DNA of 64,000 nucleotides, from NCBI GenBank assembly GCA_964187785.1, contig OZ076411.1, positions 62,062,001 to 62,126,000 of the forward strand, written 5' to 3'. Made by a program: the position numbers and the translations under genes. The notes below the pieces were generated by a model. The model was not told the DNA's origin. It saw only the letters and a program-made list of their open reading frames with translations, and made no database searches. Positions 35,375 to 59,700 of this stretch are shown here, piece by piece (the stretch's first letter is position 1; every line of letters starts with the position of its first letter). Source of the DNA: Amphiscolops sp. MND2022 (Eukaryota).

Positions 35375-35510
35375 GTTCCAACTACACTGCCGCATCGCCT
35401 GCCTGGATTGCGACAGTGAGTGGGCGGAAGTAGGTCGAAGGAACGGGATCGAAAATCAGAGTTAGTCCTCGTCGACATACCAAATTTTTGAATGGGATCG
35501 AAACGGCGGG

Positions 35511-36719: not shown

Positions 36720-36904
36720 TGGGGCATATCCGATGTATGCACGCTCGCCCTCACCGTCGCAAACACCAGCTCCCACTACGATCGCTTCGCGATCTCCCCG
36801 TTCCCGCTAGGTCTTTGCTCCTGTTCGAGCTCGCTTAGCAAGATGGGAATATAAGCGGCCCCATGGGGCCACGGGGCACTAGAGGAAATGGGGATATATC
36901 CGAG
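36720..36904 (+). mobile_element. ~180-bp dispersed repeat, copy 2
   Basis: Same sequence as 35815-35992, with hairpin GCGGCCCC-AT-GGGGCCAC and GGGCACTAG. Confidence 0.65.
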
Positions 36905-37079
36905 GCACGTTTTATGCTTTCCATCATTCCTACAATAATGGTCTTATCGTTTTTCTTCAATTCCAGAATTCAACAAACTGGTATTCTACAAACTGGACCT
37001 AACCATATTGTAGAAAACCGCAAACGAAACCAAGATACTACGGGATTAAACAAACGTACTGAAACGATTTATATTCCTC

Positions 37080-38860
37080 TGCATCCTCCGCTGCTGTGAG
37101 TGGTTTGACACAGATCCGTTCTACTATCTGCTGTGGGCGAGAAGATCACCACAAGTAACAATTCAAACAAATTGCTTTCCTTCCTCCCAGACCGCAAGGA
37201 AAATTCCATCTTGGCGTTTACCGTCTGATTGTGTCAGACCATGTGGTTCCAGAATTGACGGAACTTTGATGGAATTCAGCGCCTGTTTCACGGGAGTATT
37301 TAGGATGTGTTGCCTCGAAAAAAGTTTCGCGCTTCTGGCACAGGAAAGACCATGATGTCCGCTCTCTACGACAAGTTTACCACAACGGCAAGTGTGTTTT
37401 TCGCAAGATTTCGCTGCCAGACAGAAAGATAATGAGATGCACAGTTGCTGATCTGTTAACTTCAGACCGAGATTTTTGTTTGTACAACAAACAGCCAAGC
37501 TGAACCAGAGGTGCCTTGGTGGGCATTCAGTTTTTTGACATTTCCCGCATCAAGGTCTGTTATAAGCTGATCAAAAGTAGCATCGCTCAATGGAGACAGC
37601 CCTTGTTCTTGGATGAAGTTCGACAGGGCTTCTGATAGGTTCGTCCTCGTCAACCACAATTTCAAAGCCTTTTGAAACGATACATCAACATAGTCTTCCA
37701 GGAAGAAACACGACAGAGCACACTTGGCACCCGTTGCTGAAACTAAAACAGCAAGAAGAGTAATCTGTGAAGACGATGCAATGCCTTTGGAGTCTGGGAG
37801 AATCGCCTGAGTATAGCTGCTTTCATTAAAATTCACATTACATATTCTGGAGAAGGACTTGCGAATAATGGAATCATACTGCTGTAGGAGGTCCAACTCT
37901 TTAAAGCAAATGCTCGAACGAAGAGAATATAGTTTTTAAGTAGACTGAAGCAATTCTTAAACAGGTAGAAACCATAGTGGCCGTCTAGTTTCACAACCGA
38001 TTCAGAGAGAATTTGCAATTTTCCATAGGACTCGACGGGCATTTGATTCCATTGGCGACCCTGAAGTTTCCAACTTCTCACGGTCCTCTACTTTTTTCCC
38101 GGGCAAATTTCGTCGAAAAGCACTTTGATTCTCTTTTTTGAGTGTGCGCTTTTTTCGCTGCAAATTTTGAGGAACATCAGGTCACCTTTAGTTTTTTCGA
38201 GTTATAACCAATACTCGGCGCTAGCAATCGTCGTCGAGGTACCAAACATTATATTGCGAAACCATTTGGCTAACGAGGTCTTGGATAGTATCGGAGAAGA
38301 GAGCTAGACGTTCGGTGTCCCATTGCTGACAGCCCCCTGACGATTGTATAACTTTCTTCCCGAAGAAAATATGAGAGGTTTCGCTATATGCAGAGTGCGT
38401 ATAATTGAAAATCTAGTGTCTTTTTCGCAACACAGTGTCTAACATTTTGTCACGTTTCATCAAGTTAAAAGCCTATTTGAAATCCATCTCCAGAAAAACG
38501 TTTTCAGGATTCTGCTCGTTCTAAATGAGGTTTCGAAAAACATGTGCTACGATTTCATCTCCACGACTTGTTCCGCAGCCGGACTGCGTACCATGGAAAT
38601 CACTTCGTCGTTGGTCAGTCGCGAAGTAGCTCACACATTTTGAGCATATTCAACGCAGGGAATTTCCAACTGCAATTGGTCAAATTCCGCCGTCTTTTTT
38701 CCGAAGACCAATATTTTAAGCACCAAAGAAAAAAGTCTCAAACCGGCAGGGACTTTGCTCTCTAAGACAATATTCAGGACGCTTGTTAGTACCAAGAAAC
38801 TACTCATAACAGCCACCATTCCAGTTGACCGGTTGAAACAAGTCTCAAAAAAGCTGCAAT
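37080..38860 (-). mobile_element. Decayed CRE-like non-LTR retrotransposon fragment (RT + Zn knuckle + start of restriction-like endonuclease)
   Basis: FFGA..IGLRKKDGGI*PIAVGNSLR, GCQQWD (~38320-38337), WYLDD (~38228-38245), HTCRCG..GHHGLSC, LEPHGL..SDGKRQDG..WEEGKQ. Many frameshifts and stops. Confidence 0.85.
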
Positions 38861-38884
38861 AATATACAGGTGTAAAAAGTAACT

Positions 38885-39290
38885 ACATATAAAAAGTTTC
38901 TTCAAACGCATTTTCCAGCTCTTTGATCGACGTGCGAAATGACAGAGCATTTTACAGAGACGCGTGATGGAACTTACACTGCCCTCGCGTAAACAACCCT
39001 GTACTTTCATGGCCATCAGTTGGAAAATGTAACCAATAACTATTATTTCGCGAAATTTCCCAACCTTCAGCCTTGGTGGTGATGGTTCCCTAGTTGCAAA
39101 ATGAGCATTTTATTCAGTCGACTGGTCGCAAGAGCATCCACAACCGTGACATACCGTACCAGCTGTTCACCCATTTCACAATGAATCATGGTAATACCGA
39201 CTGGTGGGTTGCCATCAGTTCGGCACAGTCGACGCAACACGAGCAACCAAGGCAAGTCGAGAGGATTCTGGACGTTTAGGCCACAGATGT
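38885..39290 (-). mobile_element. 3'-terminal fragment of a second CRE-like element (RLE C-terminus)
   Basis: DGNPPVGITMI..EMGEQLVRYVTVVDALATSRL, then VQGCL..ITRLCKMLC and ..FEETFYM*. This is the C-terminal RLE region, directly upstream of the RT fragment. Confidence 0.75.
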
Positions 39291-39553
39291 GTCAGTGACA
39301 ATATGGCGTCGGACGTTTCGGCGACAACAGTCGCCGAAACGTCCTCTGAAAGCTGAAAACCAAAACAAAACAAGGGGAACAGGAATTAGGTCTAAGGCAT
39401 GACGTCTAAAAAAAGAACACCGTCTGAAAGCGTTTAAAATATTATTCAGGACTTTACCCTACAGAATATGGGGTAAACTGGACATCCTTCACACAAGATC
39501 CTGAGAGCACCACCGCCTAAGATCTAAAGGAAAAAGATCCAACAACTGAAAGG

Positions 39554-39735
39554 TGGGGCATATCCGGTGTATGCACACTCGCCCTCACCGTCGCAAAGAC
39601 CAGCTCCAACTGCGATTGCTTCGCGATCTCCGTTCCCGCTTTGTCTTTGCTCATGTTCGACCTCGCTCAGCATGATGGGAGCATAAGCGGCCCTAAGGGG
39701 CTGCGGGGCACTAGATGAAACAGGGGCAATTCCGA
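39554..39735 (+). mobile_element. ~180-bp dispersed repeat, copy 3
   Basis: Same family, more diverged hairpin (GCGGCCCTAAGGGGCTGC), GGGCACTAG. Confidence 0.65.
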
Positions 39736-41449
39736 GGAACGTTATATACGCAAAGGTAACTATGTAAAGTTTTTAGCTTTTCGGAGGACGTTTCGCCGAC
39801 AAAGACATTTCCCGGAAACATCTTATTTCCAGTCCAGAGATCAAAATGGAAGTTTTATGAGAAAATTGACAGTAGCGTGACGTGAGAAGTGACAAGCACC
39901 ATGGGTGCAAGAAAGACCGTCAACTGTTCCGTTTAACTTTTTCATACCACACTCGCACGTATGCGCAACACAGATAGCATGCCTTAGAAACCAGTTAGAT
40001 CGCATCGATTTTGATACACTACTGCAAGTTCTGTCTCGCTAAGTGTTTTCTCGGAAAAAATATTTACGACAACTGTGTAAACGAGACAAAGACGTGGCTC
40101 TTAGAAACGACTCCTTAAAAGAAGAAACGTGCAACTGCAGTAGCATTGACCTTTTCTGGAGAACTGGCGAAGGATATCCCCACAGCAGAGCTCATTTCAG
40201 ACGACGGTATAGTGATAATTTATAATCTGTAGGGGAAGCTAAATGAAAGCTTCGAGAAAAACTCTGCCGACCATTTCTACGAAGCTTTTGAAGTCATTGA
40301 TAGCTCCAACGAAACGGACGCGGGTAACAGTTCCGATTGTTTTATGGGCTTCAAAAGATCATCACAAGTCATTTCGCTTGAAGTCATTTGGCTTAATTTT
40401 CTCGGCGAGAAATTTAGCTCCAGAGTTTCAAGTAAGGAGACCATTAAAATAGGCCACTGCTAGTTTAACTCAAGCGATGGCTAGACACAACTCACTCAAG
40501 ACTGCCAAGTTATTCAAATCTCGAAGAAAGTTACGAAATGTTCATCATGTTTGTTGTATGGCTCGGTCAATGCGCTCTCTTCGTCAAGTAGCAACGATGC
40601 GGCATGGTCGCTTCGCTCCTCCATTTAGGGCACTAGGTCTACGTTATGATAGAAATTTCCTCAAAATCTGCCAGGCGTTTCCATCTGTGACATTAAGCCA
40701 AGGACCTAAAGCCAAGTGTCCAATTACCAAAAAGATCATAAGCCAGCAAAATATGGATTGAACCAATCAGTTCAGGCTAAAATGTTGCTAAAGGACGCTA
40801 ATAACGAATTAAACCAATGAGAATAGTTATTTGGAACTCCAATGATATGGAGTAAGATTTTATCAAGTGTACAGTCGCATTGGCACCTTTCCACAGCGCT
40901 ACAATGAAAAAGAGGCCACCACAGTGGTGTAACCGGAAACGAAAATGCAGATTGTACACGTTGTGTGGCTCGAAAGGCGATGGAAATGTTTGAATGTATG
41001 GCCCGAAAACTCTGAATTGTTTCGCAGCCTAAAAATGGCCTATTTTTGCCTAATGCCCTTTTTAATTGTGTTGTTTCCAGTTTTGTTACCAACGTTACAA
41101 TAACGAATACGCAAACTGGACATCAAACCAGACGACTTGCCAGATCATTTGAAACAAGTTAGAATTCAGTTGAATTATCAACTTTCAGGGTTGACCTTTT
41201 ATTCTTGTTTTCCGATTGAAACCAAAATACAGTGTTTTATTCGAAGTTGATCAAAGTTTAACACAACCATGTAACACAACCATGCAACCCAGGGATGGGT
41301 TTTAAAAAATTGACACTATAATGAGTGCCAGAAAATTAAAAGAAAAATTTTGCTTTTCTTTTTCGAACAAACTATTAGTGTACAATATTTTTTCTGATAA
41401 AATGGTTTTTTTGTGAGTAGACGTGCCGCTCAGATGTGTTTCGTATCGC

Positions 41450-42450
41450 GCAGTAATATTCGAGTATGCTATTAGCTTTATTTTGGCACATTGTTTAACG
41501 ATTTCAGAACGCGTTTGGAGCCCGTTTACGCTGGAAGCCCATTTTTCTGGCAGGTAATTCTCATTAGTGGAAAATCAAAGTTGTAAACACAATTGTTGTT
41601 AATAATGATGTCCATAATTAGAATTTAGAACAATTGGTGTTCTTTCAAAATAGCAAAAAAAATATAGTTTATAATATTTATTTTTCGGGGCCGCCGATAA
41701 AATATATTTATTTTTCAGATACAATATCATTGCTATACAAAATCACCCATCCCTGATGCAACCACTAAGGAACACAACGAGAGTGAAAGTCTATTTAAGC
41801 TCAGACAATGTTTCAACCTAATTCGAGAATATCTAATCAATGCTTTTTTAGATGTTGGTACACAGTTTTTTAATCTCAGAAAAATTGCCCGTTCGTTTCC
41901 AGGAAATTCGGTTACGGATATGAAAACGCGCCTATCCAATCCCGAGATTTGGAAGGCTTTAATATTTAGCCCACTGCAGTGACCATCCTTTTCGACACGT
42001 ATCAAGATGATTACCAGGTCAGAGATGTTCTGACCTGTTCTTTTCAATACTCGCAAACTTGTTGTCATTTTCAGGCCTATTTAAAACCAAGCGCTCACAG
42101 AGAAGCAAGTTCTCCAAACGCCAGTGACGAAGCAGTTCTCCAAGAACACTGCGATGTTTCGACTGGAAGGAAATGAGCCGACCGTCTGCCAGAGTTACTT
42201 CTTTTATATTTTAATATGAACTTTTTTAAATTCTTACATGTGTATATATTTTGACTATGTTTTGACTCATGCTTGAAGTTCATCAAGCATCATTTGAGCA
42301 TAATAATGAAAGGAAAAGAAAATCCGAATGTTTTATAATTGACTACGTTGCTACAGGAGACGACGAAGTTGAGATCGATGATGATGATGATGATGAAGAA
42401 AGCATTCTCCAGCAACACATTTTGACCAATAGGCATCAAATAGCCTCCTA
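41450..42450 (+). pseudogene. Unassigned spliced gene remnant converging on the SET gene
   Basis: Putative donor CAG|GTAATT (~41553), acceptor TTTTTCAG|ATACAA (~41719), and a 56-nt GTCAGA...TTTCAG intron (~42019-42074). Protein-like frame YFGTLFNDFRTRLEPVYAGSPFFWQ/IQYHCYTKSP...SNPEIWKAL with stops, and an acidic tail (EIDDDDDDEE). No family recognised. Confidence 0.35.
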
Positions 42451-42678
42451 AACGATCCGACCGTCTGCCCCAGTTGGTTCTTTTAAACGATGACGTGAGA
42501 GTCTCCATCGATATCCTATTTTTCTGATAATCCATCGGCATAAGTTGAACTCAAAGTTGACAAAGAAAGCAAAATAGGAAAGTACTATTTTTGACTATGT
42601 GACTATGACCAATATTCCAAACAGAAAATTAAAAAAAAACAGATCACTTTGAAACAAAAGTCGAGTTTATCAATGGTT

Positions 42679-43150
42679 TTATTTATTGTTACCACCAAAA
42701 ACGCGATTGGATCCAAGGTCCATGTAATCAAACATCAGCTGCTCTAGATGTACAATTTTTCGCTTTGCAAAAAGGAGCACGTAACGCGGACTAATTCTTA
42801 ACTGTGTACATTTCATTTCGACCAACTTCATGTTGCGAGCTGGGTTGACCTTTCCACCATCGAAAGTACTTGAGTTGTTGCACAATCGTGCAAGGCACCT
42901 TCTGCCATCGTTGAGGATGGGGCAAATATCTGAGGTTTTACGAATAATTCTTCCTGGCCATGTTTTAAACTCGATTTAGTATTGTGGCTTGCGGTTGCCT
43001 GGGTCCAGACTGCAGTAGTAGTCGACGTTGTTTTCTTCTACATGTCCGTGGTAGTCAAACATAACGTTATCCTTGTTAATTTGTTTGGTCGCGATTATTC
43101 GTTGACCCATAGTAGGATAAACAACATCGATAGACAAACCCCTGACCATA
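42679..43150 (-). pseudogene. SET-domain (KMT5A/SETD8/PR-Set7-like) methyltransferase, copy 1
   Basis: Single frame: GLSIDVVYPTMGQRIIATKQINKDNVMFDYHGHVEE...Y*IEFKT...RCLARLCNNS...PRYVLLFAKRKIVHLEQLMFDYMD. It matches SET motifs GxGxxATK..xYHG, RxxNHS and ELxxDY. One internal stop at 42976-42978. Confidence 0.85.
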
Positions 43151-43924
43151 TTTGGTTTTCGCTTCTAACTTTCAGGTCATCTTGGAGGAAGTAGGGGGAA
43201 GTGCAAATACTCCATTCCAGATTTGGATTGAATGCCTCTTTGCGTGAAGTTTGTAGAGATCTTGATACACCAGACAATCTAGAAGAAGCATCAAAGACTC
43301 TCTTTACATCAGCCAGTTAACCAAGTTAGCAAAATCGAATAGTCTCGTTCTTTCTTTCGCAGGATCTGTCAAGGCTGTAGACGGTCACCCTAGTGTCTGC
43401 TCTTTGATGTCTAAGTGTTTGATTTTTTTGTTTTGACTACTTTCATAAACGTTCTGTCATCGTAACATCCGCAGGGCCTCAACTGTTTTTTGACTTCCAT
43501 CATCAGGTAAGATTCAGACCAAACTTCTTCTTCTGCTGAACTTTTTGAAAGTGTCATAATTTTGACGGTTTTTTCCAATCTGTCCAATTAACGTCCAGCT
43601 GGGTTTCTTATCAAGTCAGAAAATTAGAACACGCATTTAAGTAAAGAAATAAGAAAATGCGAATGCAGGCTGGAAGGTTCCTTTGGTATTTTAGCTTGTG
43701 ATTTTTGCTTATGGTTACTATCGACTAATACCTATCAAACTAAGTAATTCTTATCAAATTTTATTTGGTCAGTTACCTGATCAATTCAATTGCTCACGTT
43801 CCGCATTGAATTGTGTTTTTTCCAATCTGTTGAGAAGAAATTCTCTGTTACGACGTAGTATGGTGTTTTCTCTTGACTGGGTGACTGCATGAACATTTTG
43901 TTCTAGTCAATGCCTTCAGGTTTG

Positions 43925-44500
43925 ATAAAATGCGAATTGTCCAGCTTCAAAATATAATAACATTTTAGCCAATATAGTGGGGAAATCTGAAACCGTCTTA
44001 GTTCCCAGCTTCATTATCGATTTGCAGGACTTACGAGTCACTTGAATTAGAAGTTCTATTCTGCTGAATTTGAGGGAACTTCTCTAAAACGGCATGAGTT
44101 GCGATGCTCAAACTTTTGCCATCTTCACAGTTATGAATGGAAAGTTCCTGCAAACAAGCAATGAGTTCCCCAAACAAATTGGTTTTGTCAAGGCCGGAGG
44201 TTTTGCCAATTTGAATTGCTTCATTATGTCATACAGTTCTGACCAGAGACGCGCCTCAACAGTTGTGCATAATGTTAGGTGCACCGGGTAATTTCTTGCA
44301 AATTTTTCTCATAATTCTTGGGAACACATCGTTTACTTTTTGAGTCATGGTTATCTTCATTAAGTTTCCGCTTGTTCGCTAACCTTTATATTGGAGAAAG
44401 GTGAACGTATCCTTCGTTCAACTTGGATGAAACTTGGCCACCTTTTAGACGACACACCGGGTGATCCATACAGTTAGTTGCGCCGAACTAGATGGATCTA
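43925..44500 (-). pseudogene. Tyrosine-recombinase-like region upstream of and co-oriented with the SET domain, copy 1
   Basis: TRKSCKSIMK-x12-LAKMLLYFEAGQFAFY fits box II spacing (RK...AxxMxH-x8-Y), with His read as TAT, one transition from CAT. Weaker matches upstream: AQLTVWITR..KVAK (box I-like) and YKG*R. Degenerate. Confidence 0.5.
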
Positions 44501-46699
44501 AGGGAGCACCAGGGGCTTTTCTAAGGGAGTACTCATGTAGTATGCGACGCTGCTTTCATTCGAAATAAACGGAAAGTTAAACGTTTCATTTGGTGCATCT
44601 AACTTTGTGACAGACGTGCTAGTCCCCATACAGTGAACGAGAGAGCTTTCTTACGTTGAGGAGTGGTAATCGTTTTGTAAAATGAGACTGTTTTCTAGCT
44701 AGTGTTTGGATTGAATGGTAAAAGCTCAATCCACTTCTTTACCGATCAAATTCGAACCAATTCAAGGATGCTTTGTCAATCAATTGTGGTATATTATAAT
44801 TAGTGAAAAACGGTAATCCTCTCAATATATTGAACATATAGATGATTATATATTTCTGATAATGAATACAAAAATTTTTGAAAAAAGTAGTTTGTGACAA
44901 TGTTGAAAATTTTTCGGATATCCAACATAGAATTTGATAAAAATGAACTCTTTTAAGGACGTTTTTCAAATCAACTCTGATATCAATTACTTGGTGACGT
45001 GCGAACCTTCAATCTTTGGTTCAAAATAGGGAATAAAAACCGAAGTATGGAGTACCCTTAGCTAATATGCATAACAGCAGTTGACATGTTGCTCATCCGT
45101 TTCAGAGTTTGCAATGAAAGGCCCATACATTTCTAAGTTTGAAAATGTCCATACATTTCCGAGTTTGAAGAAATGTTGATATCTTGAAACTCTGTCTGGA
45201 TATCTAAAATGGAATTTGAATTGTCGGATCTTTTTAAAACATATATATCACCAATATTTATTAGAAGATGTGTTTCAGGGTGCCGGAAAAAAATCAGCGA
45301 AAAAGTTGCCTGCCAGAGGCACATGTACAAAGTCTTGGCACCAAGGAAAAGATTTCAGCAAGAGCTCCACCAATAGTTCATCTGTATCACACAAAAGATT
45401 TACAGCCGGGAAAATTTATTTCTTGTTTTTGGGAATGTTGCCGGAAAGACAGAGGACCGTCCTCTAGCCACCATAGAACTGCTCAATACCCCCTCGGAAG
45501 AACCTGCACCCTGGAAGTGTTTTTGTTACAAAGGGACGAATAGTACCCTGTAAATTTGTTGGAACCAAAAACAGAAAACATTCAAAAACTGTGCAACAAA
45601 AATTCTGCTTGCCATAACCTGAAGCGTTAACACAAATTTTTTTACCTTAAAGGACAATCCGGTGTTCCTCAACCGAAGCGCAAAGGCAACGACCCTGGTC
45701 TGAAGAGAGACGGCGGGAAGGGAAAAGGTATTCGCATCGCATCCAAGACCTGGATAAGATCAAAAGGTAGCCAAAGAAGAAGATCGAACATCCACAACAC
45801 CAAGCGAGAATGGCTTCGAGAGAGAGGAGAGACCAGAAAAGAACGTACCGGCTGTTTACATCGAATCAAGTTACGACAGCAATGAAGAGGGGGAAAACGT
45901 TTAAAAAGACAGAGGTGTAGAAGGAGAAGTAGGAAGGCACGTTCCCCAAGGTACGAAAAATCCTGTTGCTTGACTTATATCGATTTTAGACAATACCAGG
46001 TCCTCCAGGGAGAGGAAGTTGAAGACGGACAAAGTGTAGAAGAAAAATTAGAAGAGCACGTTGTACGTGGTACAAAAAAATCCAGTTGTTTTACGAAAAT
46101 GAAGGAGAAGCACAATTATCTGTCCGAATGTATAAACCTGTCAGTGTACGTTTTCAGTTTTACAATTTTAGAAGTCGAATTTTAGAAGCGAATTGTTATG
46201 TCTTTTAAGTGCAATTTTTCACTTACAACATATGTCTATTTCAGCTGCAAAAACGTGTCTGGCAAGGATTTTGCAAACGCTATTCATTTTAGAGCTATGA
46301 TCGGCCCAATGGATGTCCTCGATCTCAACTCTAGTCTCATTAAGAATTTCATTTCTCCTAACCAAAAACCCTTAAAGAACTTTCATGTCTGATTTGTTTG
46401 ATTTTGAGCTGGAGAAAAGCTGCTATGTTCTCCTCAGTCAAAGTAGTTCCATTACACCTTAGTTTGTTAACTACACGAAAACCAGCGTCTTTTACTATCT
46501 TCTCCACGTTAGAAAAGAGTTTTCATGACTCCCACAACTGTTCGAGAACAAGAAATTCTCGAGAGTTGGAGCTTAGGCAAAAAAAGTTAATGTTTTCTTA
46601 CCAAGTGACCCCCACGTCCAAGGTCAAGTGTTTAAAGTGACGACAACAGCCAGCGAGTCATTAATCATCCTAGCAGGGATGAAACATATGGTTCAGAAC

Positions 46700-47100
46700 A
46701 TGCGAAGACAGCGTGGCTGTAAAATTCACTTTTCCCACCATATGTGAACTGCGTAGGCATACTTATTGCACTAATACTCATCAAAATTTTCATCATTTTT
46801 TCGGACTGTTGAAAAAATGTTCCACGAATGCTTGTGCATGACTTTAGACAGGACGTTGACTGTTTACCGGAGGGAACTGGACAATGGTGAGTCTCTGGAG
46901 AAATGCGTTCCCCATTTCTTATCGTCAATGACAAAGGTGTTACTAGAGTGTACCATTGGAGAATGCAGGCTGCTGAAATGGGAGTTTTTGGCCAAAGCAC
47001 TATTTGTCCTCAGCTTCCTTTCCAAACCATTCCAAAACAGACAGTCGATCCAAAAACAATCCAAGGAAGTTTGTTCAAACTATCAACCGGTACATGTCTG
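46700..47100 (-). pseudogene. Possible Ulp1/C48-like cysteine protease remnant, copy 1 (copy 2 ~58923-59323)
   Basis: TPISAACILQWYTLV (46941-46958; CAA is one change from His, giving the HWxLxV motif), then frameshifted VIDDKK...DS. A convincing QxxxxDCG motif was not found. Confidence 0.3.
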
Positions 47101-47289
47101 CCAAGTTCTCGAACAGGAACATATCATTATAGTAATTATTTCAAATTGTTTCCAGGACACTCGGTAAAGACTTGAGAATAGAACATTAGGTATTCGCATA
47201 AACTCACAGCGGATTCGGATGAGAGTATTATCACTGTTTTCATTCATCAATTTTTGGTCTCTCAGCTGGCTATTTCGTTCAAAACCATT

Positions 47290-48300
47290 TTCGAGAAAAA
47301 ATCTGGTTTTTTAATTCTTTTCTATATTTCCTACAACGATAAATTTTATTTAATTCGTGTATATTTTTATTGAAGTTCGAAAATGTTTTCAGCATTATTT
47401 CAGCTTTTTCTATGTTCCTCTAAATTCATATTTTTTTGCAATTTCAAAGGAGGTGAATTTAGATTCGATTATGATTCACAATGTGAATATTTCAAACGGG
47501 AGATTTCCTACTGTTTTGTTTCAACAAATTGTGGTTTCTTTGCTGATTACTTCGTTGAAAACCATTATCGAGACAAAATATTTCATGTCAAATGTTGTTT
47601 ATATATGTTATGTTAATATACTTTATTTTATTCTTTTATATAATTTTTGAATCTCGAACAAGGCTTCCAACGAACTATTTCAACACTCGTTCTAATTTCT
47701 TTTAACTTCACATTTTTTTCGCAGTCTTAAAAGGTGTGAATTTAGATTATGATTCACTTGTGAATTTTCCAAATGGAGATATTTCCACTGTTTTAATTGA
47801 TTTTTTTTGGTTTTTCAGCTGATCGAATCGTTGGAAACCATATTCGAGATGGAATGGTAATTCAAAAAATATTTATAACTCTTATTTTATTATACTTTAT
47901 TTCATTCTTATACATAATCATTAAATCTCGGAAATGATTTTTAACGAACTATTTCAGCACTTGTTGTGAGTACATCTAGTTTTACATTTTTTCCGCAGTT
48001 TGAAAGGGGGTGAATCTAAATTATAAATCAGAGTGTGAATAGTTCAAACGGGAATTTTTTCACTGTTTTACTTGAACAATTTTTGGTTTTTCAGCTGATT
48101 AAATTGCTGAAAATCTTTTTCTAGATAAAGTACAATTTTTCACATATTCTTCAAATCTACTATAATAATATATTTTATTGTATTGTTATATATCAATACG
48201 AAATTGCTAAATTTGTTTTCGACAATATATTTCAGTTCTTGTTCTGATTTCACATTTTTTCGCAGTCCCCAAGGAGTGAAGTTTAGGTGAAGTTTACTGT
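47290..48300. repeat. Diverged ~275-bp tandem repeat (3-4 units), copy 1 (copy 2 ~59515-60525)
   Basis: The motif TTTTTCGCAGT..AAGG(A/G/T)GTGAA(T/G)TT...GTGAAT..TTCAAA(C/T)GG...ACTGTTTT recurs near 47435, 47715, 47990 and 48255. Confidence 0.75.
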
Positions 48301-48619
48301 AGTACTTTAGAATGTGGATTTTCATCTCTCAGTTTTTAAAAGATTTGTTTTTATTTCTGCCTACTCTAGTTTAATATATTTTGCGCTGCTACGTTTCGCT
48401 ACATTATAATTTGTATTAAATTAGTATATTTCGATAGATTCATTTAAACAGTGACAACAAAAACAGTTTAAAAAAAGTTCAATGTTGGTTTAATCGAAGT
48501 TTTCACGTTCTTTTTTTATGATTATAAAAGTATTCCCAGTCTGATGAGTCTGGGGATGATTCGTCGCGTTCTTTTCGATCGTCATTTATTTGTTCTTGTT
48601 CACGATTCTTCAGCAACTC

Positions 48620-49157
48620 TCATCGTTTGCGAAGTATCGAAGTTATCACTGAAGTTGTCTTTTGTAGTTCGGGATTCCTCTGCAGGAGGAAAATTTTGCG
48701 ATGATCACGAACAGTAGTTGAAGGGAGGTCTGGCCCTGGTTTGAACGCAAAAGATTCCACTTCAAAGATTGTTGAAGTTTCGATTTTTTTCAGGATAAAG
48801 TCAACGGCAAAAAACATCCACCACTGGCTAAGTGCCAAAAAATATAACTGGCTCGAGATCGTTTGTTCATATTTCTTTTTTTGCACGTTCCTTTGGCCAA
48901 AACTTCTGTGGCAAGGTTTCACCAGACGTCGTTGCTCTAATAAAATTTGTGTCATTTCGGAGAACCATGTGTGGCACCTTGAAGTGTCTGGAGAGGAAAG
49001 TATCGGATGCTGCTCGTTCTACAACTTTTACTTCCGCATTTTTGATTACTTTTTCGAGACACTCAGCGACGTCAAGATTTTTCCATCTTGGTTTTCTGTT
49101 GAATTTATTGCTTTTCCTTGAATTGGCCAAGCAGAAAGAGGCTCGATCCTGAAGCAA
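48620..49157 (-). pseudogene. Unassigned decayed ORF within the 12.2-kb unit (copy 2 60843-61380)
   Basis: Two overlapping protein-like frames (…RKPRWKNLDVAECLEKVIKNAEVKVVER… and …EQTISSQLYFLALSQWW…) suggest one frameshifted gene. No family recognised. Confidence 0.3.
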
Positions 49158-50105
49158 ACGGAATATTACTTACTTCTGCAAAAACGTTGGTAATATACCG
49201 AACTTTGATTGAGTAAACGAAAAGTTCCTAAGGATATTGTTCCATTTGCCGATCGTGCTCATTGTCGAATGATACTATCAACGTTTTTGCATGTATTCAG
49301 TTTTAATTCCTCCGCTCCGATTGTTCTGAAAAAGTATGTAATAGTTGAATCATTGGAAGCTCAATGTCAAACGGTGTGACCGTCAGAACTGAATCATATT
49401 CTGCTGTATTATCATTGGACAATAAGCATGAATCTCTGAAATTTTACAAAAAATTCAATTGCAATAAATAGGTTGAAAACATAAAAGTAAGTAGATTGAG
49501 ATCGGGTTTCTCTCTCCTCCAGAGAGGGTTCCAATCTTTATGTTTTTACTAGTTGCCGCAGTTGTAAAATGCACTGTTGTCACCGGCAACCGACATCTGC
49601 GGCAAATATTACCCCACACATTATCAGCCAATGGCTACCCAAGGCTGCACCAACAGTGGCGCAGAGAAGCGAACCTGGATACCAAGAGAGAACGAGCGGC
49701 GGAACGAGCGGCGGAACAACGGAACGACACACGAAGTAACCACTACGCCAGTGGTACTTGAAAACGGTCGCTCTGTTGAGGAAGTAATTTTTCCGAGTAA
49801 CTCAAGACTAAAAATTATCGTTATGAACAATCAGCAAACCTCAGAGCAACTATTTATTCATCAATCCCATACATTATGGAGTCGTAAGATAAACAAATTT
49901 TGAACTATATTGTTGGTTTACCTAACTATATTTAGCTTAAATGATAATCAGGTTTCAGAACCAAAAAACTGGAGGTGTTCATATTGGTAGGAAAAATTAT
50001 TTAGCCACGAAAAGGAGGGACTGCTCGCGGTCTTTTTCAACTGGAATGATGGACTTCTCGATTGGTTCCAGAGAGTCCAAAAAAGATAGATTCACTTCTA
50101 TGGGT

Positions 50106-52036
50106 TCAATAAACAGCCGCTGATAACAAAGTGAGAGCTGTTCGGCAATGATGCCTTCCAAAATTGACAAACGAAGACCAGAACAGAAAATGAAAAAAAA
50201 ATTCGAGAAACATCGGGTCGGCGTGTCGAACTGTCCCACCTCCTCGCATGGTCGTTTGCTGAAAGTCTCGATGGACATGATGTTTGGATTTTTCGGTGCC
50301 TTCGCACAGCTGGTTAAAGGGTGATTCAATATAGCCTCCTTCCAACAGCTGGGGAATCAGGCACAGGTTTAGTTTGTACGGCGTCAACATTAGTTTCACA
50401 TCGAACATTACAATCGACATGTCATAGATTTCTGACAAGCCATTATATTCAGAAATGTCCTGTTTTCCGAATTTCTTCCTCGTCGTCGCCTCTACGGTCA
50501 GTTGATTTAGGGACTCTCTCCAAAGTTCGGCTGCATCCAAAAGTTTCTTTCGACATGTGCTTTTGACATTTTTAAAACAAACGTGATGAAGAGTTTTCAA
50601 GACATTCATGCTTCCACTTTTTATACCCGACAAGACTCCAACAGTCTTGTTCTCGGTAAAAACTCCCTTAAACAGTTCATGCTGAATTTCAGCCTCATCA
50701 AATTCGTCCTTATAATCAATGCCAGTCATTGCTTCTCTGCACATAAATGAAATCGGAGCACAATTTTTTTGCGTTTGTCGATGTCAAGTTCGAAGCCAGG
50801 CTCTTTCCAACCCCTCTCAGTCAAATTGAGCTGAACGTTTTTCCCTAATGAAATCAACAGTGGATGGGTCATCTCCGGATTGGATAATTTTCAACTCCTT
50901 GAACTTTCTAATGTCTCCCTCAACACATCATGTTATCTCTGGCAAAACTGTCAAACTTTCAAGCAAGATGAATGGCGGCTCGAAATGGTAGGCGAACATC
51001 ACCGCGATTGCCATTTATTTTGAGCACGGTTTCTGGGTTAATTGAATTGTCATTCCCATGATAGATCTGCCGTTTTGATGGGCTTTTTTTACTCTCCATG
51101 TGATCAACCGTGGATCCGGTGAGAAAGCGGATTCCGAATGGCTTGTCTCCACTGTATGTCAAGAGGACTACTTCGTCAAGGAGTTGTTTCATCTTCTGGT
51201 GAAGCCAAGAGGAATCTTGCTGACCTAGTTTCAAGTACCCGACAATTTGTTTAGGCGACCAACGACTGTAGTGCCTTGTTGTAAAAACACTAGTAAAAAC
51301 GTGTTGTAAAAAATGCTAAGCTAACATAGCGCTAAATTACAGTTTTCAAGCTAAATTATGATTTTGGAATTCAGCAGGGAATGATGTCAAAATAGCAGAG
51401 CATACATTGGAAAACAGCAAAAGAGAAAAGTGAATCTGATGACTGATTGCTGACAAATGTTCTTTCGAGAAAACAGAAGGACCGTCGAGTTTGATCCTTC
51501 TTCCCTATTTCAACACCATCTCCCCAAATATCAACTTTCAGACCTTGCATGTCAGTTCTTACTTTGAATAGAATGAAAGTCATATGACTCGTACATAACA
51601 CGTGACATCACGTACATGATCAATTTTTATTCCAGAGAAAATATTTCTTGGTTTTCTTAAGGAAAATAACTTTGAAATCAACGGTTTCGACTTTTCTTTG
51701 ATCGCCGAATAACCTGAAACTTTTCTGACTGAAACCTTATCAGGTTGAAAAAATGCTTCACTGGAATTGAATATTGACCGGCGAAAGACTGTGAGTCTGG
51801 GAATAGCTGCTGCGTAGAAAGAGTAGGACAAGTACTTCGTGTCGATGGAAACACACTTTGTAAACCACGAATAGAATAATTAGTATTTGCATTATTCCAA
51901 AGGCAACAAAGCAAGTTTTTTGTTTGTTTAATACAGATTCTTCGACTATTACTTCAGTTCCTTTAAATACTTTATCGATGGCGGATTTCAGTTTTCGAGA
52001 TTTCTCACAAATTACCTGCCCAGCGAAAACATCCAA
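50106..52036 (-). pseudogene. RAG1/Transib-like DDE transposase, decayed, copy 1
   Basis: Candidate triad: D in VDIWGDG (51518-51520), D in YSGDKPF (~51146), E in LCEGTEK (~50303). Spacing of about 120 and 280 codons is close to RAG1 D600/D708/E962. AAIHL (cf. ALHC), ISFMCREA (cf. MNGNFARK), LTPY...IPQLLE..I..F.CEGTEK...RGGG (cf. ITNY..HVPEIIE..SI..WASEGNES). Multiple frameshifts and stops. Confidence 0.75.
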
Positions 52037-52599
52037 ACCTTTGGCATGTACATAACTCTTTTCTTCAATTGTTTTAGTTTAATCGTGCAAAAGCTTCTGG
52101 CGCAATTTTTTCATGCTCATTGTCATACGTCAAAAATTATGTAGGAATATAGTCGAGTACTTGTTGTTTCAGTGAGTTCTCGCTAACGTGAATTTTAAAA
52201 TGCGTCTGATTGTTCGAAAAGCAATTGACAAAGTATTATAAAAGTATCTCATTACGTTTTGATGTTTCGTGCAAAAGTTTCCGGGAGTTTTTTTGTCCTT
52301 TAAAATTCGTCTGACATTCAATTAAAATGGGTCTGACAATTAAAAAGCATCTGTATGTAACGATTTGGTTCGATCAAACTCACTTGATAACTATTAGTCC
52401 CGTTACCAATTTTAATTGCTCAAACCTGCCTGATAAACATTAGTGGCCATTGCAATACTGAAAAAACTCAATAAAGAAATGATTTTTCTTGATAAAAAAC
52501 ACTAATTTCAATAACTCGTTTTAGTGTTTTTGATATGAATTAGCAAGTTCAAGTTTTGAATCCTGCAACTAAAACTTGTGAAAATCCTCGCATCATTGA

Positions 52600-54044
52600 A
52601 ATTCAAGGATTGTTTGGAATCCAAAGAAAAGACCTCAACTGGCCAGATAAACTTGTGAAGCGATTCGGATCGTACAGAATTGAAGTGTCCCCCAAAACAC
52701 TCGAAAATTTATAGCTCTTTTGGAAATTGTGGAGCTTTACAATATGTCCGCGGCGGTCCCCGGAAATCCAAAAAGCCAGCAAAAACTGTTTTTGACAACC
52801 CTGATCCAAGAAAGCGCCAACTAGGGGACAAAATCTATTTCACTGGGACGTCCCAGAAATCCCCAGCGGACATCCCTAGTTTAGAAGAAATTAAAGAAGA
52901 TGCCGAGGAGGCGAAGCTGCTGAAGTGGGGTTATATTGTCATCAATGACCCATTCCAGCAAAATATATCTTATTCCTTCGGCGGGGATATGAAAGACGTC
53001 TTCGAGTTCATCAACTAGTTACATATTTCTCCGAAGAACTGGACTCATCCAGATTTAAGGCAGCCTTCAGAGTCTGATTCAGAGTCCGAATATGTCCAAC
53101 TATCAGGGCAAAAAAAAAGAGAATAGTTGAGACAGATGCCACCATACTTTTCCCAGACCAAATATTGACATTGCCGCATATATTGCGAGTCTTGCCAAGA
53201 CAAACGATCTTCTGCTCAATGTACCCTGGGAGGATGATTTCGCTTCAGCAGGTATATGAATTTGATAAACACTAATCTAACCTCTACTGAACTACAAAAA
53301 AAAACAAAAAACTGAAATGAAGGTATTTGCCACAAGCTTCTTGAAAAACCTACCTGCATTCAGGAACTTTGTCTCATAAATATGTCTCCAGGCCTCATAA
53401 ATATGTTTTTATCCTATTATTACAATTTTTAAAAATGGTATTTTATTGATTTAATTTTGCTAAATGAATTTAATTTTCTTTTTCTGTTATTAGGTGACGA
53501 AGTTATGATTACCATCAGGGGCACGGTCTTCACGTTGAAATTGGAGAAGATATGGATCGACATAGAGATGCAGAAGGCCATGGCGAAAATGGTTGATGAA
53601 GGAGACAACTGTTACGCCATCACTCACCCAGCTGTAAAAATAGTGTTGACAGAAGTAAACTATTTGAATCTGGAAGCTCTGGACTTCTCCACAGCTTGTT
53701 CACCTGTGAATTGAGATTTTCATTACGTGTAAGCGCTGAAATTTTGGTCCGCCAATCCAAACGCGCAATAGTGAACCAAGACATTTGCCTGGTTGACGAA
53801 ATTTCTTAGAAAATTTATTTGATGGGCTCTGGACACCAATTCAGACTTCATGATCCTGATTCAGGAAAGTTCTAGACAATTGCACAATGGGACAGTATCC
53901 TTGGCCGACAATGGGTTATGCTTCTATAAATATTACCTAAGACTTGCTGCCACAGTATCGAAAAGCCTAAAAACTTCAATTATCGATGACGTTCTGCTAG
54001 AAACTGTGCGAGTATGGTTTCCAAGACAATTTAAATGGCTATAA
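52600..54044 (+). pseudogene. Unassigned spliced gene remnant divergent from the RAG1-like gene
   Basis: Protein-like frames at 52600-53250, 53492-53714 and 53850-54044. Donor CAG|GTATAT (~53252) and acceptor TTATTAG|GTGACG (~53492). Stops and frameshifts; no family recognised. Confidence 0.4.
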
Positions 54045-54903
54045 CGAATAACGTCGTTCCGCAGCCAAGTATTGCAGAAGTTAAGTTAATTTCTAATTTA
54101 ACTAATCCTTTGTATCAATTGCTAAATTAATTGTGATGTATTTTTTTAAAGTCGTTAATTAAATCTGTCTCCTGTGAATCATTTGGTATTTGATTTGGGG
54201 AGAAAGAACCGTAGTAGTGCGACACAGTAATAATTAAAGTGAAGTGAAACCATTGGTGTTTGAAAATTGAGTCAAACATTATGTGGAGGGATTTTAATTT
54301 TGTGTGGAAAGACCAGCCAGAAAGATCATATGATGTTTTCTATGAAAATTTGCACTTTTGATATATACCTTGAAGCTAAATATATTCAATTATAACAATA
54401 ATTTTGTTTAATATTTGTACAAATACTACAGAAACAATTTCATTCCTTTTTGCAATCTTTGCTAATCAAAAGTTAATCATTAGACAACGAAATTAATAAT
54501 TAAAATTCAACTATTCGCCTTATCAGCACTCATAGAACGTCGGTGGGTATAATGTAGATTAATGAAAAAGAGGAAAGTATGATAATCATTATTCAAAATG
54601 ATTTCAGGATGAAAAGAACCTGTGAGTGGTTTTACTGAATTTCTGACATTCGGCAAATACTTGCCTCTAGTTGCATAGGCAACTCTCGGGCATTTGTTGA
54701 TATGTATTATGAGATGTATTTCTTTCAAGTTAATAGGCCACACTTAGTGAGATAATCCATCGGCATAAGTTGAACTCAAAGTTGACAAAGAAAGCAAAAT
54801 AGGAAAGTACTATTTTTGACTATGTGACTATGACCAATATTCCAAACAGAAAATTAAAAAAAAACAGATCACTTTGAAACAAAAGTCGAGTTTATCAATG
54901 GTT

Positions 54904-55375
54904 TTATTTATTGTTACCACCAAAAACGCGATTGGATCCAAGGTCCATGTAATCAAACATCAGCTGCTCTAGATGTACAATTTTTCGCTTTGCAAAAAGG
55001 AGCACGTAACGCGGACTAATTCTTAACTGTGTACATTTCATTTCGACCAACTTCATGTTGCGAGCTGGGTTGACCTTTCCACCATCGAAGGTACTTGAGT
55101 TGTTGCACAATCGTGCAAGGCACCTTCTGCCATCGTTGAGGATGGGGCAAATATCTGAGGTTTTACGAATAATTCTTCCTGGCCATGTTTTAAACTCGAT
55201 TTAGTATTGTGGCTTGCGGTTGCCTGGGTCCAGACTGCAGTAGTAGTCGACGTTGTTTTCTTCTACATGTCCGTGGTAGTCAAACATAACGTTATCCTTG
55301 TTAATTTGTTTGGTCGCGATTATTCCTTGACCCATAGTAGGATAAACAACATCGATAGACGAACCCCTGACCATA
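54904..55375 (-). pseudogene. SET-domain methyltransferase, copy 2
   Basis: As copy 1 but reading MGQGIIATK (intact GxG). Same stop at 55201-55203. Confidence 0.85.
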
Positions 55376-56149
55376 TTTGGTTTTCGCTTCTAACTTTCAG
55401 GTCATCTTGGAGGAAGTAGGGGGAAGTGCAAATACTCCATTCCAGATTTGGATTGAATGTCTCTTTGCGTGAAGTTTGTAGAGATCTTGATACACCAGAC
55501 AATCTAGAAGAAGCATCAAAGACTCTCTTTACATCAGCCAGTTAACCAAGTTAGCAAAATCGAATAGTCTCGTTCTTTCTTTCGCAGGATCTGTCAAGGC
55601 TGTAGACGGTCGCCCTAGTGTCTGCTCTTTGATGTCTAAGTGTTTGATTTTTTTGTTTTGACTACTTTCATAAACGTTCTGTCATCGTAACATCCGCAGG
55701 GCCTCAACTGTTTTTTGACTTCCATCATCAGGTAAGATTCAGACCAAACTTCTTCTTCTGCTGAACTTTTTGAAAGTGTCATAATTTTGACGGTTTTTTC
55801 CAATCTGTCCAATTAACGTCCAGCTGGGTTTCTTATCAAGTCAGAAAATTAGAACACGCATTTAAGTAAAGAAATAAGAAAATGCGAATGCAGGCTGGAA
55901 GGTTCCTTTGGTATTTTAGCTTGTGATTTTTGCTTATGGTTACTATCGACTAATACCTATCAAACTAAGTAATTCTTATCAAATTTTATTTGGTCAGTTA
56001 CCTGATCAATTCAATTGCTCACGTTCCGCATTGAATTGTGTTTTTTCCAATCTGTTGAGAAGAAATTCTCTGTTACGACGTAGTATGGTGTTTTCTCTTG
56101 ACTGGGTGACTGCATGAACATTTTGTTCTAGTCAATGCCTTCAGGTTTG

Positions 56150-56725
56150 ATAAAATGCGAATTGTCCAGCTTCAAAATATAATAACATTTTAGCCAATAT
56201 AGTGGGGAAATCTGAAACCGTCTTAGTTCCCAGCTTCATTATCGATTTGCAGGACTTACGAGTCACTTGAATTAGAAGTTCTATTCTGCTGAATTTGAGG
56301 GAACTTCTCTAAAACGGCATGAGTTGCGATGCTCAAACTTTTGCCATCTTCACAGTTATGAATGGAAAGTTCCTGCAAACAAGCAATGAGTTCCCCAAAC
56401 AAATTGGTTTTGTCAAGGCCGGAGGTTTTGCCAATTTGAATTGCTTCATTATGTCATACAGTTCTGACCAGAGACGCGCCTCAACAGTTGTGCATAATGT
56501 TAGGTGCACCGGGTAATTTCTTGCAAATTTTTCTCATAATTCTTGGGAACACATCGTTTACTTTTTGAGTCATGGTTATCTTCATTAAGTTTCCGCTTGT
56601 TCGCTAACCTTTATATTGGAGAAAGGTGAACGTATCCTTCGTTCAACTTGGATGAAACTTGGCCACCTTTTAGACGACACACCGGGTGATCCATACAGTT
56701 AGTTGCGCCGAACTAGATGGATCTA
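56150..56725 (-). pseudogene. Tyrosine-recombinase-like region, copy 2
   Basis: Duplicate of 43925-44500. Confidence 0.5.
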
Positions 56726-59700
56726 AGGGAGCACCAGGGGCTTTTCTAAGGGAGTACTCATGTAGTATGCGACGCTGCTTTCATTCGAAATAAACGGAAA
56801 GTTAAACGTTTCATTTGGTGCATCTAACTTTGTGACAGACGGGCTAGTCCCCATACAGTGAACGAGAGAGCTTTCTCACGTTGAGGAGTGGTAATCGTTT
56901 TGTAAAATGAGACTGTTTTCTAGCTAGTGTTTGGATTGAATGGTAAAAGCTCAATCCACTTCTTTACCGATCAAATTCGAACCAATTCAAGGATGCTTTG
57001 TCAATCAATTGTGGTATATTATAATTAGTGAAAAACGGTAATCCTCTCAATATATTGAACATATAGATGATTATATATTTCTGATAATGAATACAAAAAT
57101 TTTTGAAAAAAGTAGTTTGTGACAATGTTGAAAATTTTTCGGATATCCAACATAGAATTTGATAAAAATGAACTCTTTTAAGGACGTTTTTCAAATCAAC
57201 TCTGATATCAATTACTTGGTGACGTGCGAACCTTCAATCTTTGGTTCAAAATAGGGAATAAAAACCGAAGTATGGAGTACCCTTAGCTAATATGCATAAC
57301 AGCAGTTGACATGTTGCTCATCCGTTTCAGAGTTTGCAATGAAAGGCCCATACATTTCTAAGTTTGAAAATGTCCATACATTTCCGAGTTTGAAGAAATG
57401 TTGATATCTTGAAACTCTGTCTGGATATCTAAAATGGAATTTGAATTGTCGGATCTTTTTAAAACATATATCACCAATAATTATTAGAAGATGTGTTTCA
57501 GGGTGCCGGAAAAAAATCAGCGAAAAAGTTGCCTGCCAGAGGCACATGTACAAAGTCTTGGCACCAAGGAAAAGATTTCAGCAAGAGCTCCAGCAATAGT
57601 TCATCTGTATCACACAAAAGATTTACAGCCGGGAAAATTTATTTCTTGTTTTTGGGAATGTTGCCGGAAAGACAGAGGACCGTCCTCTAGCCACCATAGA
57701 ACTGCTCAATACCCCCTCGGAAGAACCTGCACCCTGGAAGTGTTTTTGTTACAAAGGGACGAATAGTACCCTGTAAATTTGTTGGAACCAAAAACAGAAA
57801 ACATTCAAAAACTGTGCAACAAAAATTCTGCTTGCCATAACCTGAAGCGTTAACACAAATTTTTTTACCTTAAAGGACAATCCGGTGTTCCTCAACCGAA
57901 GCGCAAAGGCAACGACCCTGGTCTGAAGAGAGACGGCGGGAAGGGAAAAGGTATTCGCATCGCATCCAAGACCTGGATAAGATCAAAAGGTAGCCAAAGA
58001 AGAAGATCGAACATCCACAACACCAAGCGAGAATGGCTTCGAGAGAGAGGAGAGACCAGAAAAGAACGTACCGGCTGTTTACATCGAATCAAGTTACGAC
58101 AGCAATGAAGAGGGGGAAAACGTTTAAAAAGACAGAGGTGTAGAAGGAGAAGTAGGAAGGCACGTTCCCCAAGATACGAAAAATCCTGTTGTTTGACTTA
58201 TATCGATTTTAGACAATACCAGGTCCTCCAGGGAGAGGAAGTTGAAGACGGACAAAGTGTAGAAGAAAAATTAGAAGAGCACGTTGTACGTGGTACAAAA
58301 AAATCCAGTTGTTTTACGAAAATGAAGGAGAAGCAGAATTATCTGTCCGAATGTATAAACCTGTCAGTGTACGTTTTCAGTTTTACAATTTTAGAAGTCG
58401 AATTTTAGAAGCGAATTGTTATGTCTTTTAAGTGCAATTTTTCACTTACAACATATGTCTATTTCAGCTGCAAAAACGTGTCTGGCAAGGATTTTGCAAA
58501 CGCTATTCATTTTAGAGCTATGATCGGCCCAATGGATGTCCTCGATCTCAACTCTAGTCTCATGAAGAATTTCATTTCTCCTAACCAAAAACCCTTAAAG
58601 AACTTTCATGTCTGATTTGTTTGATTTTGAGCTGGAGAAAAGCTGCTATGTTCTCCTCAGTCAAAGTAGTTCCATTACACCTTAGTTTGTTAACTACACG
58701 AAAACCAGCGTCTTTTACTATCTTCTCCACGTTAGAAAAGAGTTTTCATGACTCCCACAACAGTTCGAGAACAAGAAATTCTCGAGACTTGGAGCTTAGG
58801 CAAAAAAAGTTAATGTTTTCTTACCAAGTGACCCCCACGTCCAAGGTCAAGTGTTTAAAGTGACGACAACAGCCAGCGAGTCATTAATCATGCTAGCAGG
58901 GATGAAACATATGGTTCAGAACATGCGAAGACAGCGTGGCTGTAAAATTCACTTTTCCCACCATATGTGAACTGCGTAGGCATACTTATTGCACTAATAC
59001 TCATCAAAATTTTCATCATTTTTTCGGACTGTTGAAAAAATGTTCCACGAATGCTTGTGCATGACTTTAGACAGGACGTTGACTGTTTACCGGAGGGAAC
59101 TGGACAATGGTGAGTCTCTGGAGAAATGCGTTCCCCATTTCTTATCGTCAATGACAAAGGTGTTACTAGAGTGTACCATTGGAGAATGCAGGCTGCTGAA
59201 ATGGGAGTTTTTGGCCAAAGCACTATTTGTCCTCAGCTTCCTTTCCAAACCATTCCAAAACAGACAGTCGATCCAAAAACAATCCAAGGAAGTTTGTTCA
59301 AACTATCAACCGGTACATGTCTGCCAAGTTCTCGAACAGGAACATATCATTATAGTAATTATTTCAAATTGTTTCCAGGACACTCGGTAAAGACTTGAGA
59401 ATAGAACATTAGGTATTCGCATAAACTCACAGCGGATTCGGATGAGAGTATTATCACTGTTTTCATTCATCAATTTTTGGTCTCTCAGCTGGCTATTTCG
59501 TTCAAAACCATTTTCGAGATAAAATCTGGTTTTTTAATTCTTTTCTATATTTCCTACAACGATAAATTTTATTTAATTCGTGTATATTTTTATTGAAGTT
59601 CGAAAATGTTTTCAGCATTATTTCAGCTTTTTCTATGTTCCTCTAAATTCATATTGTTTTGCAATTTCAAAGGAGGTGAATTTAGATTCGATTATGATTC

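Follow-up and report, generated by a model that had tools for sequence, protein, structure and literature searches.

An old, internally duplicated copy of a large transposon in Amphiscolops sp. and its young relatives carrying predicted SET and JmjC genes and a transposase of modelled RAG1-type fold

What kind of element underlies a 12.2-kb block of decayed genes at 42526-54750 in a 64,000-nucleotide stretch of the Amphiscolops sp. MND2022 genome (GCA_964187785.1, contig OZ076411.1, positions 62,062,001 to 62,126,000 of the forward strand; hereafter the window)? A preliminary description, made from the sequence alone, had read this block as one complete transposon that combines a RAG1/Transib-like transposase with a SET-domain gene and a tyrosine-recombinase-like segment. 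We consider it very probable that the block belongs to an old, dead copy of a large RAG1-fold transposon which was duplicated internally, and that this copy has young relatives of 18.9 kb with 23-bp terminal inverted repeats (TIRs), 2-bp target site duplications (TSDs) and SET and JmjC genes as cargo.

Limits of the element and its dispersed relatives

A single transposon copy, old and dead but with its TIRs and GC/GC TSD still present, occupies 40917 to about 67124. The block at 42526-54750 is not the whole element as previously proposed but the first copy of an internal tandem duplication, and the true ends lie at 40917 and about 67124. The following features delimit the copy:

40915-40916, left copy of the TSD (GC); the right copy is located at about 67125-67126, just past the window
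40917-40939, plus strand, left TIR, CACCACAGTGGTGTAACCGG..., with 17 of 20 positions matching the young-family TIR CATTACAGTGGGGTAACCGG
40917-64000, continuing to about 67124, old decayed copy of the 18.9-kb TIR transposon; the right TIR, ...GTTACTGTAATG, is found at about 67124
41859-41960, remnant of a second right end located inside the element; in young copies it comprises a TIR and about 100 bp of right subterminal sequence
42526-54750, tandem-duplication unit 1 (the block of the preliminary description), equivalent to positions of about 2650-18790 in the young element
54751-64000, continuing to 66993 past the window end, tandem-duplication unit 2, in which the decayed genes of unit 1 recur at an offset of about 12,225 bp

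At its borders the copy reads ...gaggc followed by CACCACAG... on the left and ...CTGTAATG followed by gctac... on the right, which gives the GC/GC TSD. It is collinear from end to end with a complete young copy (positions 1-18947) at 74-81% identity. Homology to the family runs inward from the left end (40921-41044 correspond to young positions 5-129), crosses the left duplication boundary (42120-42574) without a break, reaching about 41084, and on the other side continues beyond unit 2 as far as about 67117. Searches by tblastn with the intact proteins of young copies as queries showed that every gene in the window copy is broken by stops and frameshifts and that all of them are decayed to a like degree, as had been noted before.

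A whole-genome search with the unit identified dispersed copies which are about 78% identical to the window and about 99% identical to one another. With an 801-bp query at least 27 copies of about 100% identity were found, together with about 13 more at 88-92%. The complete young copy, taken from a second assembly in ENA, comprises 18,947 bp and is bounded by perfect 23-bp TIRs, 5'-CATTACAGTGGGG...CCCCACTGTAATG-3'. The right terminus is sharp in six of six young copies, which share ...GGTTACCCCACTGTAATG and then diverge fully. The termini are of the CA..TG type both in young copies (CATTACAG...CTGTAATG) and in the window copy (CACCACAG...CTGTAATG). A 2-bp TSD is perfect in seven of eight copies, namely seven young ones and that of the window (AA, AA, AT, TT, TT, AG and GC), and the only imperfect pair reads AT/TT. 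Thus, the family is a large multi-gene cut-and-paste DNA transposon which proliferated recently and apparently uses a 2-bp staggered target. Since there are dozens of near-identical copies with sharp TIRs and clean 2-bp TSDs, the young family is likely active or was so until recently.

The same genes in the same order were present in ten of ten dispersed copies located in ENA. In the orientation of the window this order starts with the left TIR, a 92-aa open reading frame (ORF), the internal right-end copy with its TIR, the SET gene (minus strand) and a 449-aa ORF (minus strand). It continues with an acidic ORF, a satellite array of variable length with units of 235-300 bp and the JmjC gene (plus strand), and ends with a three-exon transposase gene (minus strand), two ORFs of 270 and 216 aa (plus strand) and the right TIR. 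The preliminary proposal of a multi-gene mobile element with a putative chromatin-modifying gene of its own therefore holds for the family. Moreover, none of the three observations named there as speaking against it was made: in the ten dispersed copies the genes do not occur independently of each other, the copies share their termini, and no family other than RAG1 was assigned to the transposase.

Three further observations concern the architecture of the copies. Every young copy contains an internal second right end (L042:11762-13968) made up of about 100 bp and a TIR that has two mismatches, located 2.2 kb from the left terminus. Because of this second right end, the left 2.2 kb resemble a small element, complete in itself, that is nested in the end of the large element, and this layout appears ancestral to the family since the homologous stretch is kept in the old window copy (41859-41960). 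The satellite array of young copies (e.g. L041:11190-15700) differs in copy number between near-identical copies, and its units are ORFs of 52-97 aa; the window copy has a different array with a period of about 275 bp at another internal position. Next to one young copy, an ORF with a match to the Pfam family Monjiviricetes_fusion (L057:4263-5486) is viral glycoprotein-like and presumably represents an endogenous viral or retroelement env gene.

Transposase and cargo genes

The gene remnants within unit 1 of the window copy are listed below with the lengths of their intact forms in amino acids.

42688-43623, minus strand, SET-domain gene remnant (310 aa intact, P0157), 54% identity with 10 stops over 329 aligned residues
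43738-44629, minus strand, remnant of the 449-aa ORF upstream of SET, the stretch formerly labelled tyrosine recombinase (YR) box II, located by tblastn
45191-45857, plus strand, acidic ORF remnant, which adjoins the satellite array in young copies, located by tblastn
46246-46696, plus strand, JmjC-domain exon remnant (207 aa intact), by Pfam on young copies and tblastn
47233-48197, array of the tandem repeat of about 275 bp, unit-1 counterpart of a TRF array at 59690-60337 in unit 2
48539-48889, minus strand, BRCT exon remnant, the C-terminal exon of the transposase, by Pfam on young copies and tblastn
49991-51336, minus strand, transposase core exon remnant (468 aa intact), 49-65% identity with stops and frameshifts
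51380-51777, minus strand, transposase N-terminal exon remnant with the DIWGDG motif (candidate first catalytic Asp), located by tblastn
52499-54093, plus strand, remnants of two ORFs (270 and 216 aa intact) divergent from the transposase gene, located by tblastn

The genes of the preliminary description, including the divergent plus-strand gene at 52499-54093, are real, whereas the JmjC and BRCT exons had been missed.

The transposase gene is predicted to consist of a BRCT exon, a 468-aa core exon and a 276-aa N-terminal exon. Pfam recognises BRCT in those copies in which this exon is unbroken, and in homologues of the transposase the BRCT domain is part of one continuous protein. The relatives of the 468-aa exon are all unannotated. 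An exhaustive profile search identified 366 family members, some of them longer than 1000 aa, on which BRCT is the sole Pfam domain. For one member, P0008, an AlphaFold model was used (predicted local distance difference test, pLDDT, 83.5). In a Foldseek search of this model against the PDB, ranks 1-46 were all RAG1, HzTransib or the amphioxus RAGL protein (BbRAGL), with a best E value of 2.8e-8. Alignment with VIA-align of model residues 211-774 to mouse RAG1 459-1005 gave a Z score of 18.7 and a root-mean-square deviation of 4.2 Å over 420 residues; HzTransib and BbRAGL reached Z 16.7 and 16.3, with spans of 408-426 residues for RAG1, Transib and RAGL, and the P element transposase reached Z 11.3. 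Model residues 818-965 aligned with BRCT domains at a Z score of about 11.5. Overall, the model confidently points to a RAG1/Transib-type fold of the transposase core.

In the family alignment D317 (within DIWGDG), D426 (within SGDQPF) and E725/E728 are invariant (P0008 numbering). These candidate DDE residues are located at the expected strand and helix places of the model. In RAG1 the catalytic residues are D600, D708 and E962. Also invariant in the family are D499-x-x-H502 and the histidines H722 and H732, which form an H(9)H motif. In the AlphaFold database the nearest clusters to the P0008 model are uncharacterised proteins, which with a best E value of 1.3e-12 rank ahead of the RAG1 entry. 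At rank 26 of the same search we noticed A0A7E5A209, a protein of 727 aa annotated as SET domain-containing, whose residues 103-690 align with the transposase fold, a hint at an association of SET with this type of transposase elsewhere too, possibly as a fusion.

The SET and putative YR pieces of the window were too short and too broken for scoring with Pfam, and intact young copies were used instead. The SET domain proposed earlier was confirmed in this way: the intact protein P0157, whose decayed counterpart lies at 42688-43623, matches Pfam SET (PF00856) with an E value of 1e-8, and its nearest solved relatives are KMT5A/SETD8. A relative, P0158, shares 58% identity with P0157 and is still recognised as a SET protein. 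The intact JmjC exon was identified by Pfam at 1e-9 with KDM2A, PHF8 and KDM7 as nearest proteins (1e-15 to 1e-18). Its WHVD...GKKEF...H pattern, which comprises the HxD...H iron triad and the lysine for 2-oxoglutarate, is preserved in two lineages with an identity of about 37%. Accordingly, a predicted KMT5A-like SET-domain gene and a predicted KDM2/PHF8/KDM7-like JmjC gene are cargo of the young family. A Pfam scan of the 51 open frames of at least 70 aa in the intact copy, from which 12 repeat frames of the satellite array were left out, recognised SET and JmjC alone.

These genes might be inert passengers, that is, host gene fragments captured in the manner of Pack-type elements and without a role for the transposon. 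Large DNA transposons often pick up host fragments, the JmjC domain was seen as a lone 207-aa exon, and the SET protein has N-Y/F-S instead of N-H-S. However, the cargo ORFs are open in most young copies, the SET domain is recognised in a relative at 58% identity, and a domain of the 449-aa ORF is conserved at 53%. In addition, the lineage with about 37% transposase identity retains the block of the 270-aa ORF, the BRCT-bearing transposase and JmjC, with the iron triad and the position beside the transposase preserved. Since the linkage of these three genes is kept at such a distance, it must be old, and the pattern of conservation across SET, the 449-aa ORF and JmjC indicates long-term purifying selection on the cargo. 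We therefore consider it unlikely that the cargo genes are mere passengers.

The tandem duplication and the unassigned reading frames

The block that had first drawn attention owes its limits to a second event. In a comparison of the window with itself, 42526-51776 and 54751-64000 were 99.65% identical. After 40 kb of downstream sequence had been appended, exactly two complete head-to-tail copies were found (42526-54750 and 54751-66993), which are 99.4% identical; over 12.2 kb, 49 substitutions and 9 small indels separate them. The three breakpoint sequences have only the letters GA in common, and the junction at 54750/54751 contains neither Ns nor gaps. Thus, a 12,225-bp block was duplicated recently in tandem by a non-homologous event with a 2-bp microhomology. 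As there are two exact units whose breakpoints share GA only, the coordinates of the preliminary description reflect the period of this duplication and not the ends of an element.

It could be argued that the duplication is an artefact of assembly in which two haplotypes of one locus were set side by side, so that the real locus would be a single decayed copy of 14 kb. The divergence of 0.4% between the units is within the allelic range. Moreover, no contig bridging 54750/54751 was present among the Logan contigs listed, and those shown at variable sites have one version only. On the other hand, Logan contigs that were built independently and represent all four runs of a single sample break off or begin precisely at 54751/54752, and others lead from the unit end into the right flank or from the left flank into the unit start. 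Such breaks and flank continuations correspond to the graph branch that a true duplication would create. The junction is free of Ns and gaps, and precise ends with a 2-bp microhomology inside a contig are not normally expected from a haplotig join. Hence, we hold an artefact to be quite improbable and retain the tandem duplication.

The minus-strand gene upstream of SET had been described as tyrosine-recombinase-like; a tyrosine recombinase at this place would make the element a Crypton- or DIRS-like hybrid. Indeed, a conserved domain exists at the stretch labelled box II: the 449-aa ORF has a C-terminal domain of about 200 residues with 53% identity between lineages, and the predicted fold of its C-terminal half reached a pLDDT of only 37. 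However, the ORF gave no Pfam match (no Phage_integrase even at E 0.05) and no PDB profile match at E values up to 10, and the invariant residues of the conserved domain do not show the R..HxxR..Y arrangement (the R-H-R-Y pattern of the tyrosine recombinases). In addition, TIRs and 2-bp TSDs suit DDE transposition and not integration by a tyrosine recombinase. This interpretation therefore has very little probability, and we continue to regard the element as a DDE transposon. That the block at 42526-54750 is itself a complete transposon, possibly inserted twice in tandem, has next to no probability: two full units do lie precisely head to tail and one unit holds nearly the whole gene set, but the unit ends have no TIRs, the unit boundaries coincide with no end of the dispersed copies compared, the unit junction shows GA microhomology only, and family homology extends outward to the true TIRs with their GC/GC TSD, on the left by about 1.6 kb from 42526 and on the right by 131 bp from 66993.

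The remaining reading frames gave few leads. A possible Ulp1-like remnant had been suggested as further cargo; this was not borne out, as no Peptidase_C48 was found among the 51 ORFs of at least 70 aa of the intact copy (E ≤ 0.01), and Phage_integrase was likewise not found among them. The 270-aa and 216-aa ORFs had no Pfam or PDB sequence match and no assignment in the protein atlas, which also returned no match for the 449-aa ORF. For the 270-aa ORF (L041:4222-5031) a language-model search gave sub-threshold leads, all of them to the protein-kinase-like clan (RIO/Kdo/APH; score 0.80), while Pfam and PDB were silent; a kinase label was not assigned. A kinase next to a BRCT-bearing transposase would be notable if true, and is mentioned here as a lead only.

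Outside the element the window contains repeats of other kinds. Two direct repeats of 211 bp (17001-17211 and 22235-22442), which are 98.6% identical and 5.2 kb apart, resemble a pair of long terminal repeats or another bounded insertion. A cluster of other repeat families occupies 35500-39750; it includes minisatellites with units of 19-40 bp (35511-36233), repeats of about 200 bp (35806-36003, 36711-36915 and 39547-39747) as well as a repeat of 1.7 kb (37049-38790), of which the genome contains at least 25 copies that are about 80% identical. When the genome was searched with a wide query from the left flank, the matches were dominated by unrelated repeat families.

Classification and implications

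Transib transposons make 5-bp TSDs, and such a TSD had been named as a feature to look for here. The resemblance to RAG1 and Transib suggested earlier holds for the fold but not for membership in Transib. As the TSD of the family is 2 bp instead of 5 and neither a sequence match nor a Pfam RAG1 match was found, Transib membership is not supported. The whole core fold following the nonamer-binding domain matches, with HzTransib and BbRAGL aligning nearly as well as RAG1, and the termini of the family begin with CA and contain a CACAGTG-like heptamer (window left end CACCACAGTG). In contrast to Transib, RAG1 and ProtoRAG, the family has a 2-bp TSD, a C-terminal BRCT domain, a length of 19 kb and chromatin-enzyme cargo. 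ProtoRAG elements have an adjacent RAG2-like gene encoding a Kelch propeller; at the sequence level no such partner was recognised here, as the adjacent two-ORF gene is without a Pfam or PDB match.

The CACTA-Mirage-Chapaev-Transib (CMCT) clade is characterised by 5'-CA..TG-3' termini, TSDs of 2-5 bp, a DDE triad on an RNase H-like fold, and the motifs C(2)C and H(3-4)H (PMC12730594). Because of its CA..TG termini, its 2-bp TSD and its RAG1-related fold, the family fits a divergent lineage of this wider clade, with the Mirage, Chapaev and EnSpm transposases compared by description only. It also resembles the clade in being a large element with epigenetic cargo, and its alignment has DxxH and H(9)H as invariant motifs where C(2)C and H(3-4)H are not evident. 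A TSD of 2 bp, together with similarity of the transposase to MIRAGE1, also marks the Mirage superfamily, and the agreement noted here is one in the TSD. TET/JBP genes are known as cargo of fungal Plavaka, ESTA and EnSpm elements.

SET genes carried by transposons are, as such, not new. According to PMC12730594, which cites Kojima & Jurka 2014, a gene for a SET histone methyltransferase is present in HarbingerS and MuDR families of Phytophthora, where the element's own SET gene is read as interfering with chromatin-based silencing. Those families belong to another transposase superfamily and host group, whereas here JmjC accompanies SET and the transposase bears BRCT. A SET domain is also linked with a DDE transposase in SETMAR/Metnase; however, SETMAR represents one fusion, domesticated in the host, that involves a mariner transposase, while the SET domain described here is encoded by a separate gene in a mobile multi-copy element of another superfamily. 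In the literature searched we found no description of a BRCT-fused RAG1-fold transposase with SET and JmjC cargo.

From these data a more far-reaching proposal can be derived. The family may be a still-active, undescribed lineage with a RAG1/Transib fold which is distinct from Transib by its 2-bp TSD and altered metal-binding motifs and whose transposase is fused to BRCT, a reader of phospho-peptides. In this view a functional methyltransferase of the H4K20 type and a demethylase of the KDM2/PHF8/KDM7 type would have been inherited together with it for a long time and would rewrite chromatin at its own copies or at break sites. We put this forward tentatively, as a possibility that falls short of being probable. 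Several of our results weigh against parts of the main reading, on which it builds. The fold of the transposase core was derived from the predicted structure of the homologue P0008 and not from the window's own protein. Pfam, phmmer and profile searches of the PDB found no RAG1 or Transib sequence match for the transposase; in the PDB only BRCT-level matches to DNA ligase IV were obtained. Since likeness to RAG1 or Transib is missing at the sequence level, the placement in the clade rests on predicted structure. A six-frame search of the whole genome with PF12940 was empty, but the controls were equally silent, so that this result is uninformative. The canonical C(2)C...H(3-4)H zinc motif of the clade is not evident in the family alignment. 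P0157 keeps the FDY motif and has N-Y-S in place of the usual N-H-S (N-F-S in P0158), which makes its methyltransferase activity uncertain. The conservation of this change in different lineages may point to a modified activity and not to decay. In the lineage with about 37% identity SET was not seen within the sequence available. Finally, the exon structure and expression of the element's genes are predictions from sequence, and the lack of a contig across the duplication junction has been described above.

If the transposase works as its fold family suggests, catalysis would involve the candidate residues D317, D426 and E725 or E728 of P0008 and a 2-bp staggered cut of the target, and hairpins would form on the flanking DNA as in RAG and Transib. 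KMT5A writes H4K20me1 and PHF8 erases it. Speculatively, the SET and JmjC products could edit histone methylation at or around the element, which might help it to escape silencing or steer the repair of breaks, and the BRCT tail might join the transposase to phospho-dependent DNA-repair factors.

The main value of the copy in the window is that it represents an older branch by which the gene set can be dated; it is also a clean case of a microhomology-mediated 12-kb tandem duplication which imitates a repeat unit. RAG1 descends from a Transib-like transposase, and to our knowledge few lineages with the RAG1/Transib fold have been characterised. The family would therefore offer a tractable relative in which the choice of stagger and of partners by RAG-type enzymes could be studied. 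Furthermore, only a few transposons are known to have chromatin or epigenetic enzymes of their own, and with its BRCT tail and its paired putative methyltransferase and demethylase the family may extend this list beyond fungi and oomycetes.

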